Sequence record: NC_042018.1
Length of the DNA: 64,000 nucleotides
Reading direction: 5' to 3' (one strand)
In this document: positions 5,469 through 15,417 of the stretch, piece after piece
Layout: each line of letters begins with the position of its first letter
Position numbering within the stretch: the stretch's first letter is position 1
The notes under the pieces: generated by a model
What the model saw: the letters and a program-made list of their open reading frames with translations, nothing else
What the model was told of the DNA's origin: nothing
Databases searched by the model: none
Program-made: the position numbers and the translations under genes

Positions 5469-6533
5469 ATGGAACTGGGTGAAGAAGAGCTGGGTAGCGG
5501 GATTCCGGATGTTGAGCATATCGACACGGTCATGGACGGCATTATCGATACGGTAACGGGGACCGAGGGGTTAACCCATGCTCAACGTTATTTGGCAGGT
5601 ACGTTGTATGCCAGCGGCATGGTGTCCTATTCGCAGTACCATGGTAGCGAAGGGGTGATGGATACCATCAAAGGGGGATTGAAGAAAGCCTGGGATTACA
5701 TCGTGAAGATGTTTAAACAAATCTGGGGTTTCTTCTTTAAATCGAAAGGTAAACAGGAAGCGGCTGACGCCAAGGCTGCAGTTAGACAGCTGGAAGAGTT
5801 TAGCAATCTGCGTCCTGTTAAATCAGAAGATCGCCGTCGCGCGGTTACTGAAATGGTGAGGGCCGGTGCAAAGCTTGCGCACATGGATTTGGATAAAACC
5901 GATCCAAACGCTAAACGCGCCATGATGCAGCATCTCGAAGTAATGAAAGAGAAAAGCAAAGAGATGCAGCAACTGAGCCCGAACGAGAGCAGCAAAGAAG
6001 CGGCTATCGTTACCGAGGTTAAAAAGGAATTCCAGGAAATTTGTGTAGAGCACGTTAGCGTGAACCTGAGTAATCTCAAAACCAAAGTAGTGGCGAAACT
6101 TACTTCAATTTACGAAAACAACAAAAAGCTGGATGCACTCAAAACCGACACGAGTAAGGATTTGGGTATTACTTGGTTAAAAGGAATTTCGCGTAATATT
6201 GATCGGTTCATTAGTGATATGCGAACCTTTTCAACCGTGTTAGAAGAGTTCCGTTCGACTGAACACGCCAGCAGCTTTGCAAGTAAACTCAAGGGTTACA
6301 TTTCACACATGGAAACCCTCATGGAGAGCTGCGCCAAAACGGAAAATGCGGTTCGTGAATTGATGCGTACTCTTGAGAAAGAGTTAGCAGAAAATCCTAA
6401 TGATCCACAAGTAGCTGCTTTGTTGAATCATGTAAAGACCGGCTTGAAGCTGTCAGCTGAAGTAGCCGAAACAGTAAGTTGGTTATTGCGTGTCACTACC
6501 CAGCTTTGCGATCGCTACTCCGTAAAAGCATAA
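5469..6533 (+). CDS. head/ejection protein of a paralog family with a G-x-E propeptide
   Basis: 354 aa. N-terminus GIIDTVTGTEG...AQRYL...YHGSEGVMDTIKGG is visibly homologous to the N-terminus of 7837..8751. Confidence 0.6.
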   Translation: MELGEEELGSGIPDVEHIDTVMDGIIDTVTGTEGLTHAQRYLAGTLYASGMVSYSQYHGSEGVMDTIKGGLKKAWDYIVKMFKQIWGFFFKSKGKQEAADAKAAVRQLEEFSNLRPVKSEDRRRAVTEMVRAGAKLAHMDLDKTDPNAKRAMMQHLEVMKEKSKEMQQLSPNESSKEAAIVTEVKKEFQEICVEHVSVNLSNLKTKVVAKLTSIYENNKKLDALKTDTSKDLGITWLKGISRNIDRFISDMRTFSTVLEEFRSTEHASSFASKLKGYISHMETLMESCAKTENAVRELMRTLEKELAENPNDPQVAALLNHVKTGLKLSAEVAETVSWLLRVTTQLCDRYSVKA

Positions 6534-10660: not shown

Positions 10661-10669
10661 TCTATAACG

Positions 10670-10697
10670 CTACTCCTACCCGTTTGGGTAGGAGTAG
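10670..10697 (+). terminator. intrinsic terminator
   Basis: CTACTCCTACCC-gttt-GGGTAGGAGTAG followed by a T-rich tract. Confidence 0.75.
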
Positions 10698-10848
10698 TTT
10701 ACTTATATATTTTATGTTTTTTGTAACTGTCTCGTAAGTTTTTACCGACGGATAAATATCCTATGTCTTTCCGTTTCGTCATCTCTCTTTTTCTTACCTA
10801 AATTTCCTCCATAAATTACTCTAAAAAGTGGTTTACGGAGGGGGTTTG

Positions 10849-10882
10849 GGGGAGGACAAGAGAACGGGAGGACAAGAGAACA
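10849..10882. repeat. perfect 17-nt tandem duplication
   Basis: GGGGAGGACAAGAGAAC at 10849-10865 and again at 10866-10882. Confidence 0.85.
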
Positions 10883-11274
10883 GTTTCGAACAGTTTTGAA
10901 AGTTTTGGGGCCGCTGCCCCAGGTTACATAAGTTAACTAAGAGAATAAGAATAATTATAATAAATACATTAAGAGAATAAGATCAGATCGGATCCGGGAA
11001 AACGTTAATTAGCTAACTATCCTTAGGGGTAGTTAGAGAGAAGGATTATGATCAGAGACAGAGAGTAAGCTTAACTATAGTTAAGGGATAGAGAGTAGGG
11101 ATCAGGAGAAGAGCATACAGGGATCCTGTTATAGGGAATACCAGTAATTCTTCATAGTGAGCTTTATAGTTATAACCAGATAATATGTCTAGGGTAAAGT
11201 CCTCTGGATATACATTACTTAATAATCATAATAGTTCATTTAAGATACTGTTATTGTAAGGATATAGCAAGTCA

Positions 11275-12324: not shown

Positions 12325-12339
12325 TATATTACTAGGGTG
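12325..12339 (+). promoter_or_regulatory. early (virion RNAP) promoter, TATATTAC type
   Basis: Exact TATATTAC (phiKZ early consensus) followed by TAGGGTG, with a T-rich upstream tract. Confidence 0.65.
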
Positions 12340-12378
12340 AATACTTCCCTGTTATTAATTTATTTAAAGGATAACTCA

Positions 12379-13125
12379 ATGTCTACTTCCAATGCTAAAA
12401 TGAAACCGTCTGTTCGCAAACTGTACGAAGACCGTCTGCTGAAAGCCCAGGACCACCTGGCGACGTTAACGATTGCCCGCGATAATCTGCAGGCCGCGAT
12501 TGAGCAGGCGCAGGACGACGTGGTAAGTCTGGAACGTACCCTGGCTGACGATGAAGTACTGGGTCATCTCACTTTCCTTTCGCCGACCAGTAGAGGTTTA
12601 ACCCAGCTTTGTCGGAACATCGAACAAGGGGTAGCTGTAATTAAGAAAACCGAACAGGCACAACAGTCCCAATCTGAGCCATGCGGAATGATTGCAGTAC
12701 CGTTCAGTCATATCTTCCGTATGATCGTCAACGCTTATGATGACTCAGCCACGACACCTGACCAGCCTGAGTCTGAGCAGTTTATGACCATGGCTGCTCA
12801 TGTTCCGTTTTATCATGAGTGTGCACAGCAGTCTCAGCCCGAGTCTATACTGACCAGCCTGAAACCAACTAAACCCACACCGGATACAGTGTCTCGTGTT
12901 GAACAAGCTCAAGCCATCGTGCAACAGCTGAATATCGACGACCTGGTCATTGCAAATCACTTGATTGAATTACTGGACGGTCTGAAATACGATATTCCTC
13001 TCATCACACCCGACAGAATCTGTGAACTGGCTGTGCAAAACTTTGAAGGCATACACCGTCGTGAACATTGCACACCGATGCAAGACCACGGGTTCCGTTT
13101 CTACGTAATGACCGGCCGTAAATAA
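12379..13125 (+). CDS. hypothetical early protein
   Basis: ORF 12337..13125. ATG 12379 follows AAAGGA; the track's GTG start lies inside the promoter motif. Confidence 0.6.
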   Translation: MSTSNAKMKPSVRKLYEDRLLKAQDHLATLTIARDNLQAAIEQAQDDVVSLERTLADDEVLGHLTFLSPTSRGLTQLCRNIEQGVAVIKKTEQAQQSQSEPCGMIAVPFSHIFRMIVNAYDDSATTPDQPESEQFMTMAAHVPFYHECAQQSQPESILTSLKPTKPTPDTVSRVEQAQAIVQQLNIDDLVIANHLIELLDGLKYDIPLITPDRICELAVQNFEGIHRREHCTPMQDHGFRFYVMTGRK

Positions 13126-13549
13126 ATAATTGGGTGGCGGATATTATAACCCAGGAGTCACTGTGCATTATATGCTTAAGTGAGGACTGTGTGTTGCTGG
13201 TACTTTCACTACCGGTAACGAATTGCCCGCCACTGCCATTTAAAACCTATTTTGGGTATATGTTATTGTTAGAAGATTTGAGAGTGCTGATCACCTTTTC
13301 CGTGGCACTCTCATTTTTATTTTTGTTTATTTTTTTGTATGTGTATCTTATACGGAGAATAATTACCTGAGTAGTTTGACTGCGAAAAGTTTCGGGTTCG
13401 CTCTGCAGCTGAATGTCAACAGCCAACACCTCAAACAAAATTTTCGTTATCATCATTTTAAACGGATTTAGTCGCCACCACCGGGGAAGCCTGGGATTAT
13501 CCGGTTAAACTACTCACATAATTCTTTTTAGTGTATGTTATACACAACC

Positions 13550-14275
13550 GAACTGAAGCACCATAGCAATCTGGACTCGTCGCCTAGAGCTGCGTTTGAC
13601 TTTTTCTTTAAACCATGGCCTGGCTTGTTGAGTAACCAACGGCAGACTTTGGGTTGTCTTGTTCAGTCTATTGTGCTTCACCCCTTTACCGTTTTCAGCG
13701 CCTGATGTGATTCCAGAGTCGGGTTCCTGCTTTTGTTGAAAACGGTCCTTCTTGCCGGTGCTCTCTGCACTCACGGTGAAATCTCCATTTACCACGCCCC
13801 CTGATTAGGGTTTCGGAGAGTACTGGCAAACCTTTCCTCGGTATGTCGTTTACATGTCTGCGCTTAACCTTTGTGAGAGCGCGGGGCGCATGATTCGGCA
13901 ACCCTGGTTACGAGCACTTTATATCTTTCTGCTCACAATCCCTCCCTCAGGCACATGGCCGGGAAACGGAGGGTCCATCTGATGTGCAACGGAGACGGGT
14001 CTGTTGAACTTGCGCGAAAAGATACGGGCTGCCTTTTAATGTGTAATCCCTCAAAGCGAATGTGGGAGATAGCATCCAGACCCAAAGGCGGTCAAGTTGT
14101 TAAAACAAGTAGCCCGAGAATGAGAGGGCGAACGGAGTATGCAGCCTGTTGGCTAGCTCGGGAATTGAGTCGACCGATACCCGAATTGGCCAATGGAGTG
14201 TTTACTTTCAGACGGTGACACTAGTGGAAGCATCAGTCGGTGATGCAACTGCAGCGGAAAACAGACAAAGCTTAT
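13550..14275 (+). ncRNA. candidate large structured non-coding RNA, class unknown
   Basis: No credible ORF. A series of long stems with G-U pairs on the + strand: 13554-13576/13661-13680, 13689-13700/13734-13745, 13752-13766/13815-13829, 14025-14040/14099-14116, 14230-14246. Ends at a terminator. Confidence 0.65.
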
Positions 14276-14289
14276 TTTTCTATCCTTTA

Positions 14290-14323
14290 GTTACTCTTGG
14301 CCTAGGCCAAGAGTAACATTTTT
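14290..14323 (+). terminator. intrinsic terminator closing the candidate ncRNA
   Basis: Perfect 28-nt inverted repeat GTTACTCTTGGCCT/AGGCCAAGAGTAAC followed by ATTTTT. Confidence 0.75.
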
Positions 14324-14394
14324 CTATGTTTGCTATTTTTATTTTTTCACTGATTGGTTAAGTATATTAGCGGGACCCTAAAGATTTTTACCTC

Positions 14395-14409
14395 TATATT
14401 ACCAGGGTG
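14395..14409 (+). promoter_or_regulatory. early promoter of phuZ (TATATTAC)
   Basis: GATTTTTACCTC-TATATTAC-CAGGGTG. Confidence 0.65.
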
Positions 14410-14451
14410 TATAGGCAACTGCAATTAATCCATTTAATCAAGGAGAAGTAC

Positions 14452-15417
14452 ATGTCTGAATTACAATACTACCTGTGTGGCGGCGCTGGCATCTCTATCG
14501 GTGTGGCTCTGAAACAACAGACCAACACGGCGGCTAACCGCACAGCTAAGATGGTCGGCATCGACAGCTCTGACCGCAACGACTCTGACGGCCTCTTCCC
14601 GGTAGTACGTATGGAAGGCACGCGCGGTTCTGGTAAAGTGAAATCCACCAACGCCGAACCGATGAAACCGTTCCTGGCAGAAGTGCTGACCCAACACAAA
14701 CCGGCCAGCTTCAACATCATCGTCTGTAACGCCGCTGGCGGTACCGGTTCCCTGATGGCAACCTACCTGCTTCAGAAACTCGTCGCTGCAGGTAAAGTGG
14801 TATTCCTCTGCCTGGCATCTGACGAGACCAGTCAGAAAGAGTTCGAGAACGTCATCTCCACCAAACGTTCTTTCGCTGCCCAGACTGAGAAAAACCAACT
14901 CGACGTGCCGGTTCCGTATCTGGACATTGTTCAGACGCCGGACATGACCCGTGGTGATGCAAACCGCCGTATCGTTAACCAGCTCGATCTGTTGAGCCTG
15001 TTCGCAACTGAAACCAATGAAGAAGTGGATTATCAAGACATCTTGTCTATGGTCCGCTACTCCAAAACCTGTAACGTTGCGCCGGCGCTGAGCAAAATCA
15101 CTTTCCACGATCAGGAAACGGCCCGCTCCTATACCGGTAAAGTTCCGGTAGCAGTGTGCTCGCTGTTTGATAACCGCGACGCGGTAGCGCCGTTGTTTGA
15201 AGGTTGCGTATACCGTGCAACCGGTGTGTTCAACAAATCCAACAACCCACCGGCTGATCTGAAAGAGATTCACATGGTCTTTGACCACGGTGAAGCAATC
15301 GACGAGCTGAAGGAGCGCATGGAATTGCTGAACGACCGCAAAATCGTAACAGCCAACAAGTACTCTGAAGTTGACAAAGTCAGCGACGGTGCCGACGATT
15401 CCGGCGTGTTCTACTAA
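14452..15417 (+). CDS. phuZ: PhuZ phage tubulin
   Basis: CGGAGISIG nucleotide-binding loop, AAGGTGS tubulin signature, acidic C-terminal tail DDSGVFY, ~321 aa. ATG 14452 follows AAGGAG. Confidence 0.92.
   Translation: MSELQYYLCGGAGISIGVALKQQTNTAANRTAKMVGIDSSDRNDSDGLFPVVRMEGTRGSGKVKSTNAEPMKPFLAEVLTQHKPASFNIIVCNAAGGTGSLMATYLLQKLVAAGKVVFLCLASDETSQKEFENVISTKRSFAAQTEKNQLDVPVPYLDIVQTPDMTRGDANRRIVNQLDLLSLFATETNEEVDYQDILSMVRYSKTCNVAPALSKITFHDQETARSYTGKVPVAVCSLFDNRDAVAPLFEGCVYRATGVFNKSNNPPADLKEIHMVFDHGEAIDELKERMELLNDRKIVTANKYSEVDKVSDGADDSGVFY

Follow-up and report, generated by a model that had tools for sequence, protein, structure and literature searches.

Large ornate RNAs of unknown function form a rare class, which includes OLE, GOLLD and ROOL. 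OLE works with the proteins OapA, OapB and OapC in Firmicutes, and GOLLD and ROOL are phage-encoded RNAs of 600–800+ nucleotides (nt) with many helices and pseudoknots, which assemble via kissing loops. In loop L9.3 of OLE the palindrome is GGCC in some homologs and GAUC or AGCU in others, a change interpreted as evidence of a homodimer contact, and palindrome switching has been used as support for intermolecular kissing loops in both OLE L9.3 and GOLLD L21a (bioRxiv 10.1101/2024.12.08.627333). The nucleus-forming jumbo phages have been studied almost wholly via their proteins (shell, PhuZ and RNA polymerases). Small RNAs (sRNAs) of two Chimalliviridae, phiKZ and 201phi2-1, were mapped by ONT-cappable-seq, some of them being conserved between genera (PMC11512511; review PMC13282480); they are shorter than 250 nt and mostly derived from 5′ untranslated regions, and PhuZ is not mentioned in connection with them (PMC11512511). 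The subject of this work is a locus of about 0.8–1 kb in the Erwinia phage vB_EamM_RisingSun, situated between gp14 and the tubulin gene phuZ, which almost certainly carries a gene for a structured non-coding RNA (ncRNA) on the + strand. This RNA has a pseudoknotted core, is under tighter nucleotide constraint than the neighbouring phuZ, is absent from Rfam, and is common to cultured Erwinia phages and many uncultured relatives.

The DNA analysed (the window) was identified by blastn as the first 64 kb (64,000 nt) of the RisingSun genome (NC_042018 / MF459646), with identical coordinates. RisingSun belongs to the phiKZ-like jumbo phages and encodes a nuclear shell protein, split RNA polymerases and PhuZ. 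The 1.3-kb gap between the end of gp14 (13125) and the start of phuZ (14452), that is 13126–14451, is longer than any other part of the window that lacks a credible gene, the runner-up being a gap of 614 nt at 10661–11274, and its G+C content (GC) is 0.49–0.54 across 13600–14200 as compared with 0.37–0.41 in the flanking spacers. An earlier note on this DNA, made from the letters alone, had described it as the longest non-coding stretch of a gene-dense window, with about 50% GC unlike the AT-rich spacers, and had proposed that it encodes a large ornate + strand ncRNA with its own terminator, outside the known families. Both descriptions were correct, and the proposal is supported by decay of the open reading frames (ORFs), covariation, strand-specific folding and the lack of Rfam matches.

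When all 4227 families of Rfam 15 were compared by cmscan, no match at the gathering score was found in the window and none at E ≤ 10 in 13100–14460. The same search gave no match at the gathering score in 11 related loci (loci of relatives carry L numbers), the gaps of L014 and L008 yielding chance-level matches only at E ≤ 10, and in the distant homologs no family match except a sub-threshold hammerhead in L333. No tRNA or tmRNA was found by ARAGORN in 12500–15000. The RNA is not a member of ROOL, GOLLD, OLE, HEARO, raiA, introns, RNase P, tmRNA, SRP or 6S, in agreement with the failure of the earlier note to match it to group I/II introns, RNase P, tmRNA, SRP or 6S; in addition to the lack of an intron match, the flanking gp14 and phuZ are complete and unrelated to each other. 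The 8-mer AAGCAGCC is presumably also present in 4.5S RNA, its structural context here being different.

The earlier note had compared the RNA with ROOL and GOLLD, and the comparison is apt as to the kind of object and fails as to homology. The RNA is likewise phage-encoded and of similar size, with many helices and a pseudoknot and with a conserved core of about 300 nt next to clade-specific domains (D1–D3), and one of its loops has the evolutionary signature of a symmetric kissing loop. It differs from GOLLD and ROOL in showing no sequence or structure homology and no Rfam match at E ≤ 10, in not lying beside tRNA genes, and in belonging to lytic nucleus-forming jumbo phages rather than to prophages. 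OLE is an unrelated RNA from another host biology. The sRNAs of phiKZ and 201phi2-1 are likewise non-coding transcripts of Chimalliviridae, but none has a multi-domain covarying fold. No earlier description of an RNA at the gp14–phuZ locus was found in the literature, the paper characterising RisingSun being silent on the region. It is a new RNA family of a known kind, the large ornate phage RNAs, and is present in cultured and uncultured jumbo phages.

The only cultured phages matching the locus by DNA search were RisingSun and its sister phage Joad, which are 98.8% identical over 13100–14460 by blastn. Further relatives were collected by a PhuZ search, and contigs with the closest PhuZ relatives (81–49% identical) were fetched. 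The gene order of RisingSun was common to all of them. A gene-free gap of 1.0–1.3 kb lies upstream of phuZ in L006, L008, L009, L011, L012, L014 and L016; in L013 the contig end cuts the gap after 990 nt, in which no gene was called. The gaps could be aligned and consisted of invariant blocks between variable stems.

The annotation of RisingSun places two small genes, gp15 and gp16, in the gap, and the earlier note had correctly listed an ORF of 87 amino acids (aa) besides, naming its conservation as a finding that would speak against an RNA. All three proved to be disrupted. In every relative gp15 has frameshifting indels and 4–6 stops, and gp16 frameshifting indels and 3–4 stops; the frame of the 87-aa ORF is shifted by indels in all relatives and meets its first stop at codon 9–27, and in Joad the ORF has a 1-nt deletion. 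For gp15 there was no Pfam match and the best PHROGs match had E = 0.34. The reading of these ORFs as real genes for small proteins can point to their existence, to the annotation of two of them, to the PHROG family of gp16 and to tblastn “matches” of the 87-aa ORF in relatives. The sole PHROG match of gp16 (phrog_37016; Pfam none), however, runs end to end over residues 1–85 of 85 and looks like a family built from gp16 itself, and the tblastn matches fall in several frames and on both strands, which indicates conservation at the nucleotide level and not coding. As no gene was called in the gap of any relative either, this reading has scarcely any probability; gp15 and gp16, and likewise JOAD_15 and JOAD_16, look like spurious ORF calls atop the RNA, and their annotation is due for re-examination. 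A decayed HslV-type peptidase gene, such a gene lying upstream of phuZ in phages EL and FishSpeaker, was also considered and rejected (best E = 0.26 by tblastn of both proteins; no DNA similarity by nhmmer). The DNA of the gap is non-coding.

It is nevertheless strongly conserved. Over 13330–14357 (1028 nt) RisingSun and Joad differ by a single 1-nt indel. In phuZ they differ by 24 substitutions in 966 nt, all of which are synonymous since the PhuZ proteins are identical, and at this synonymous rate about 25 changes would be expected in 13330–14357. The 3′ core of the RNA is 96% (L006) and 93% (L011) identical to that of RisingSun, as compared with 81% and 76%, respectively, for phuZ DNA. The gap is thus under strong purifying selection at the nucleotide level.

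Folding of 13527–14323 gave −279 kcal/mol for the + strand (z = −3.41; 0 of 20 dinucleotide shuffles as good) and −229.9 kcal/mol for the − strand (z = +0.54). In all eight homologs the + strand of the main unit (unit B, Table 1) had z between −3.6 and −6.6 and a minimum free energy 24–89 kcal/mol below that of the − strand; the − strand folded no better than shuffles in RisingSun, L006 and L013. An RNAalifold consensus over 13335–14325 was then counted on a six-sequence alignment, with the 3′ partners slid by 1–3 columns as control. Pairing was found in 91.3% of cells (38–43% with slid partners) and 99 pairs had changes on both sides (14–28 in the control), and none of 500 shuffles reached the observed values. 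The best-supported helices, namely 13361–13385/13500–13523, D1, D2, D3, H25, H27, H31, H32, H33 and the terminator, contained 181 G-U/U-G cells versus 40 A-C/C-A cells, and when read as the − strand their paired fraction was 80.2% instead of 90.5%. The + strand of the gap was thereby shown to have a predicted multi-domain structure backed by compensatory changes. The preference for G-U over A-C on the + strand had been seen in the earlier note; stem stability against dinucleotide shuffles and compensatory changes in homologs, both of which it had proposed as checks, came out in its favour, the latter being strong in alignments of 6, 8 and 13–14 sequences.

The same data bear on the possibility that the conserved element acts as DNA, for instance as an origin of replication, as a site of packaging or recombination, or as a cruciform. 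A long non-coding region rich in inverted repeats would suit such a role, as would the palindromic hexamers GTCGAC in RisingSun and CTCGAG, TCCGGA and TGGCCA in relatives, and we know of no identified replication origin in the Chimalliviridae. The tolerance of the helices for G-U and not A-C, and the failure of the − strand to fold better than shuffles in three loci, are those of an RNA. Cruciforms would need neither a covarying pseudoknot nor long-range pairs spanning up to ~100 nt, and the unit is framed by a hammerhead and intrinsic terminators on the same strand. A DNA-level element is therefore very improbable.

The features of the locus are collected in Table 1. The consensus TAT-N-Y-TAT-R has only two matches in the 64 kb, at 13344 and 13534, and each related gap of full length likewise has two copies, their spacing being conserved. 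It resembles the late-promoter core recognised by the non-virion RNA polymerase (nvRNAP) of phiKZ, and transcription may start there. The phiKZ core is TATG, with G as +1 (PMC4666361). The place of TATG within the motif varies, being at bases 1–4 in RisingSun, L008 and L009 and at bases 6–9 in L014 and L016, the others having TATA. The TATG that the earlier note had placed at 13524–13527, where the bases are CTTT, lies 10 nt further downstream, at 13534–13537.

Two units follow the two motifs, and the 5′ limit of 13527 first proposed for the RNA was too late, as the covarying unit A lies in the conserved block; the locus starts about 190 nt further 5′. The closing helix of unit A is paired in 93% of cells, and 10 of its 22 pairs have changes on both sides; the z value of the + strand of unit A was −3.0 to −4.6 in seven homologs. 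Unit A ends in its own intrinsic terminator in L014 and L016, which makes two tandem RNA genes, units A and B, the probable arrangement. The locus apparently comprises two tandem units rather than the single one envisaged before. Unit B ends, as had been predicted, in an intrinsic terminator at 14290–14317, 12 base pairs (bp) followed by a T run; 6 of its 12 pairs are changed on both sides, and every cell (100%) is paired in the relatives. At the upstream edge the inverted repeat of 13280–13318, which was outside the pair-count tests, is found at equal columns in each relative with differing stem letters, especially in L006 (alignment A2). In L016 an additional strong terminator-like hairpin with a U-rich tail (AACUCCUACUG...CAGUAGGAGUU; 5650–5710, unit B ~623–680) lies about 150 nt before the terminator used as the 3′ end, and the L016 RNA may thus end earlier, with another small unit after it.

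Table 1. Features of the gp14–phuZ gap of RisingSun, with positions in the window.
Feature	Position	Strand	Remarks
Terminator-like hairpin, end of gp14 transcript (GAGAGTGC...GCACTCTC + T run)	13280–13318	+	Upstream edge of RNA locus
gp15 (annotated, 69 aa)	13247–13456	−	Overlaps unit A; judged a spurious ORF call
Motif 1, TATCTTATAC, promoter-like	13344–13353	+	Just before unit A
Unit A, ~170-nt structured RNA or 5′ domain	13352–13523	+	Closing helix 13361–13385/13500–13523
Motif 2, TATGTTATAC, second promoter-like copy	13534–13543	+	Just before unit B
gp16 (annotated, 85 aa)	13538–13795	−	Overlaps unit B; judged a spurious ORF call
Unit B, ~780 nt	13542–14323	+	Follows motif 2, ends in covarying terminator
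D1, long irregular hairpin with branched tip	13555–13679	+	Helices 7 and 8: 7/12 and 9/21 pairs changed on both sides
D2, hairpin (13687–13700/13734–13746 + 13701–13706/13718–13723)	13687–13746	+	Helix 13: 8/14 pairs changed on both sides
D3, 16-bp outer helix around internal region	13752–13829	+	Helix 15: 10/16 pairs changed on both sides
Part-clade hairpin	13860–13882	+	Helix 18, invariant where present
Pa hairpin	13911–13935	+	Stem covaries, 4/5 pairs changed on both sides (alignment A7, eight sequences)
Pseudoknot, 13922–13928 (UAUCUUU) × 14018–14024 (AAAGAUA)	13922–14024	+	7 bp
87-aa ORF	13955–14218	+	Not a conserved coding unit
H25/H26 hairpin, conserved UGAUG ahead	13984–14015	+	5/6 pairs changed on both sides
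H27 (14027–14036/14084–14093) with inner hairpins	14027–14093	+	6/10 pairs changed on both sides
CAAGUUGU, invariant single-stranded junction block	14093–14100	+	Identical in 12/13 family members, partly imposed by the search patterns that found distant members; L088 has GAAGUUGU
H32, including invariant GCAGCC (14143–14148) at base	14136–14206	+	Covariation
H32 apical loop, palindrome GUCGAC	14169–14174	+	Candidate symmetric kissing-loop dimerisation site
H33 hairpin in 3′ extension, conserved loop CAGUCGG	14224–14252	+	7/12 pairs changed on both sides
Unit B intrinsic terminator	14290–14323	+	12-bp stem (6 G-C pairs), 4-nt loop, TTTTT
TATGTTTG directly after terminator	14325–14332	+	Invariant in close clade and L013; L014 has TATGTTTGC

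The 5′ half of unit B (D1–D3) was found in the RisingSun clade only, and the hairpin at 13860–13882 is absent in L006, L008 keeping only the 3′ half of the segment. Five helices of the first description recur in the covariation-supported consensus: D1 (13555–13566/13668–13679 + 13570–13593/13642–13667), D2 (13687–13700/13734–13746), 13752–13767/13814–13829, 13860–13868/13873–13882 and 14224–14235/14241–14252. Two further stems listed there were wrong: GCACAT/ATGTGC is not part of that consensus, and the two-part helix at 14025–14040/14099–14116 is broken in relatives, its covarying replacement being 14027–14036/14084–14093.

The part common to all homologs is a core of ~300 nt at 13911–14212, in which Pa, the 7-bp pseudoknot, H25, H27, the invariant CAAGUUGU, H31, the invariant GCAGCC, H32 and GGAGUG follow one another. 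In eight sequences the core elements, pseudoknot included, were 95.8% paired, as compared with 36–48% with slid partners, and H27 alone had 98.6% of cells paired. The 13-nt loop of Pa, CUUUAUAUCUUUC, is nearly invariant. All 7 pairs of the pseudoknot are kept in 8 of 8 sequences with 3 compensatory positions, the variants being UAUCCUU/AAGGAUA, GACCUUU/AAAGGUC and UACCUUU/AAAGGUA. In H32, 16 of 19 inner pairs were changed on both sides among 13 homologs in an alignment fitted to a covariance model, and 18 of 31 in an independent MAFFT and RNAalifold run. In the segment 13979–14022 the conserved UGAUG before H25 and GAAAAG after it (GUGAUGAG...CUCAAAAG in L013) are reminiscent of a hammerhead or a k-turn-like junction; the segment is without the essential hammerhead bases, and the flanking bases are in ordinary pairs.

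Junction blocks that stay invariant across very divergent homologs while the helices covary are typical of ribozyme and riboswitch cores, and with the pseudoknot, and the combination of hammerhead and core in relatives, they could suggest a catalytic RNA, either a large ribozyme by itself or the RNA part of a catalytic ribonucleoprotein, with CAAGUUGU, GCAGCC, GGAGUG and the pseudoknot as the active site. The pattern fits a protein- or ligand-binding RNA equally well, however, and no Rfam ribozyme family matched even at E ≤ 10; nor were there flanking exons, a conserved cleavage or ligation junction, or a co-occurring gene for a partner protein. A catalytic function is thus regarded as unlikely.

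In four lineages the apical loop of H32 is self-complementary, and its letters change between them while the palindrome is kept. It reads GUCGAC in the RisingSun clade, ACUCGAGU in L014 and L016 and, by eye, UCCGGA in L333 and UGGCCA in L088, a switching like that of OLE L9.3. A 6-nt palindrome is expected in 0.06–0.12 of random loops of these lengths, and the chance of four lineages having four different palindromes of 6 nt or more is ~2 × 10^−5. As adjacent bases of one loop are unable to pair within a single molecule, the switching led to the proposal of an intermolecular contact. The odds that the RNA self-associates through a kissing loop of H32, judged from this signature, are about even.

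The core recurs beyond the contigs selected by PhuZ. A covariance model of 14093–14212 recovered all the close relatives at 61–130 bits and, after a scan of IMG/VR in which loci were pre-picked by sequence pattern, L367, L371, L114, L088 and L333 at 16–31 bits. These are viral contigs of 220–232 kb. Eighty metagenome loci fitting a comparable pattern by chance served as control and scored ≤17.4 bits at the pattern site. Outside both the model and the pattern, L114, L367 and L333 were seen by eye to have H27 and the loop-to-3′ pseudoknot with new complementary sequences (ACCUUAA/UUAAGGU in L114, UACGGUU/AACCGUA in L333), and these three were accepted as homologs because of these extra features. 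The assignment of L371 rests on the model score and its close resemblance to L367, and that of L088 on the score, on GAAGUUGU at the right distance, which its pattern did not demand, and on H32, a pseudoknot of 5 bp only being possible. In the 3′-core alignment of the 13 homologs, which was fitted to the model and whose 14 rows include a spurious minus-strand match in L009, 89.6% of cells were paired as compared with 38–46% in the control. Smaller versions of what is, by sequence and predicted pairing, the same core were thus shown on other contigs of jumbo-phage size. Minimal ones of ~270 nt are found in L114 (5390–5839) and L367 (1580–2026), between a gene for a protein of ~148 aa, which lies directly upstream and whose product by eye looks like a macro domain, and a small ORF. 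No cultured relatives of these two contigs (228–232 kb) were found by tblastn, and BLAST of the L013, L016, L114 and L088 RNAs against cultured phages gave no meaningful match.

Other patterns were tried and yielded hardly more than chance matches. GCAGCCTRTT..AATGGRRDG had 93 matches in IMG/VR, the real ones being the RisingSun contig itself and L088 only. CAAGTTGT..GCAGCCTRYT..AATGG had 90 matches on metagenome contigs, none above 17.4 bits at the pattern site, and a near-identical pattern ending in ARTGGR had 39 on genome contigs, in unrelated bacteria. TACGG..AAGTTGT..GCAGCCT had >120 matches in IMG/VR, and among 79 new loci tested with model R1 there was one weak match (21.3 bits, E = 0.075).

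A complete type I hammerhead adjoins the 5′ side of the core in L333 and L088 and is of the same strand; it has the order CUGAUGAG, stem II, CGAAAC, stem III and GUC, with predicted cleavage after C. The L333 segment 1625–1681 covered the full Rfam Hammerhead_1 model with 22.1 bits (E = 0.0065), below the gathering score of 34; L088, like the cultured Klebsiella phage Miami, fits the hammerhead sequence pattern. In RisingSun the hammerhead core pattern is absent from the 64-kb window. Processing of phage transcripts by hammerheads is known (PMC3088659). The hammerhead, a type described from phage intergenic regions, would here be an accessory maker of the 5′ end and not the conserved core, and its presence in some relatives suggests that what counts is a free RNA whose 5′ end is defined.

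By blastn with the L333 hammerhead segment, Miami and its relatives were found to carry such a segment ~1.26 kb upstream of their phuZ, which in Miami lies in a 1.5-kb stretch annotated with tiny ORFs only. The hammerhead itself is unannotated (L375 2405–2475; NC_070950.1, about 222,404–222,474) and reads GUGUUAU-CUGAUGAG-UCUU..AAGA-CGAAAC-CUAAU..AUUAGG-UC, with AUAA past the cleavage site. The same type of segment was detected by blastn in Raoultella phage VB_ZK_P1, Klebsiella phage YC1 and Stenotrophomonas phage BUCTxx100 and, at lower identity, in Pseudomonas phages ZC03 and ZC08. The Miami hammerhead is followed by ~700 nt of structured + strand RNA (z = −4.69 for the + and −1.86 for the − strand), and gp268–gp270 of Miami may be spurious ORF calls, probably due for the same re-examination. 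No homology between the body of this RNA and the RisingSun core was detected (only the hammerhead aligns; model R1 gave 12.4 bits, E = 0.06; nhmmer gave nothing), and Miami is regarded as having an analogous locus.

The position of the RNA raises the question of whether it serves phuZ in cis, as a leader or regulator that starts at 13344 or 13534 and acts by conditional read-through of the 14290 hairpin, through attenuation or stabilisation of the mRNA. In the RisingSun-like clade it always lies immediately upstream of phuZ, a conserved TATGTTTG stands directly after the terminator, and in Miami the analogous structured + strand region with its 5′ hammerhead is likewise upstream of phuZ. The terminator, on the other hand, is a perfect 12-bp stem with a U run, kept by compensatory changes, and is separated from phuZ by an AT-rich spacer of ~130 nt with a conserved early-promoter-like CTAYATTAY. 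The core of L114, L367 and L333 precedes a different ORF, not recognisably phuZ, and 780 nt is far above the size of any known attenuator. A cis-acting leader is accordingly held to be improbable. Within the spacer, ACCTCTATATTAC at 14390–14402, ~50 nt before phuZ, is conserved in relatives, and TATGTTTG and ACCTCTATATTAC may be a late-type and an early-type promoter of phuZ, respectively.

The preferred explanation is that the locus carries ncRNA genes with transcripts of their own. Judging from the motifs, the RNA is likely to be made as an independent transcript: units A (~170 nt) and B (~780 nt) would each be transcribed from their own TAT-N-Y-TAT-R element, and unit B would stop at the 14290–14317 terminator, giving a free trans-acting RNA and not an mRNA leader, whereas some relatives would set the 5′ end by hammerhead self-cleavage instead. 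The palindromic H32 loop would join two copies of the folded RNA in a symmetric kissing loop like those of OLE and GOLLD, and the invariant junction would be a binding surface or, less probably, a catalytic one. The product would be an RNA-only or RNA–protein scaffold or decoy in middle or late infection, a role that is tentative and, taken by itself, rather doubtful. As a whole, the account of ncRNA genes with own transcripts, self-association by kissing loop and a scaffold or decoy function is, on balance, favoured.

Several points weigh against it. No transcript data were found for RisingSun or its relatives, so that promoters, 5′ ends and abundance are inferred, and the neighbouring genes give no pointer to a partner or pathway. 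No clear terminator separates A from B in the RisingSun clade, where both may belong to one RNA of ~970 nt. Pairs were counted on the alignments from which the consensus structure had itself been derived, with only 8–13 distinct sequences; the margins over the controls are very large despite this circularity, which with the small number of sequences renders short helices such as 13546–13550/14213–14217 and 14256–14285 uncertain. The model scores of the distant homologs are inflated, since the patterns by which they were found already demand the invariant blocks. The H32-loop palindrome is missing in L114, L367 and L371 and reduced to CCGG (4 nt) in L013, and the palindromes could be DNA-level protein or restriction sites.

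A farther-reaching possibility, to which we give less than an even chance by some distance, is that the RNA belongs to an undescribed class of large self-associating RNAs specific to jumbo phages and central to the infection cycle. The pseudoknotted core of ~300 nt (~270 minimal) would then have been kept across deeply divergent lineages, including the cultured nucleus-forming Erwinia phages, with the 5′ end produced from a dedicated promoter or by a hammerhead, and would assemble into a dimer or a larger complex of RNA alone, or into one of RNA and protein. It might, for example, sequester a host factor in the cytoplasm or organise components around the phage nucleus and the PhuZ spindle, and would in that case be not merely another regulatory sRNA. 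A cultured, genetically tractable phage–host pair is at hand in RisingSun or Joad on Erwinia, and the natural minimal versions suit structure determination. The covarying palindromic loop predicts self-association, and from the relatives with a hammerhead the place of the 5′ end can be predicted.

In the neighbourhood of the locus, gp14 (12337–13125) is hypervariable. In the 4.4 kb that were compared between RisingSun and Joad it accounts for about 190 differences, the RNA next door being identical, and gp14 homologs in relatives range from 220 to 574 aa. For gp11–gp14 and gp18–gp23 no informative Pfam or PHROG family was found. The 614-nt gap at 10661–11274 is AT-rich (GC 0.33–0.40), with a strong G>C skew in its middle, and carries a perfect tandem GGGAGGACAAGAGAAC ×2 (10850–10881), a 23-nt direct repeat and a 12-bp terminator-like hairpin at 10670–10697; a gap of similar size is found at the equivalent place in L006, L008 and L011. 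In the EL-like phages (PhuZ 45–48% identical) the gap upstream of phuZ is only ~510 nt, the core blocks are absent from it, and similarity to unit A or the core was undetectable. One TATCTTATACC motif, ~140 nt and a terminator nevertheless follow one another there (L004 4495–5000, which is phage EL, and L018, L205 and L206), and this stretch resembles a short RNA gene occupying the corresponding position.

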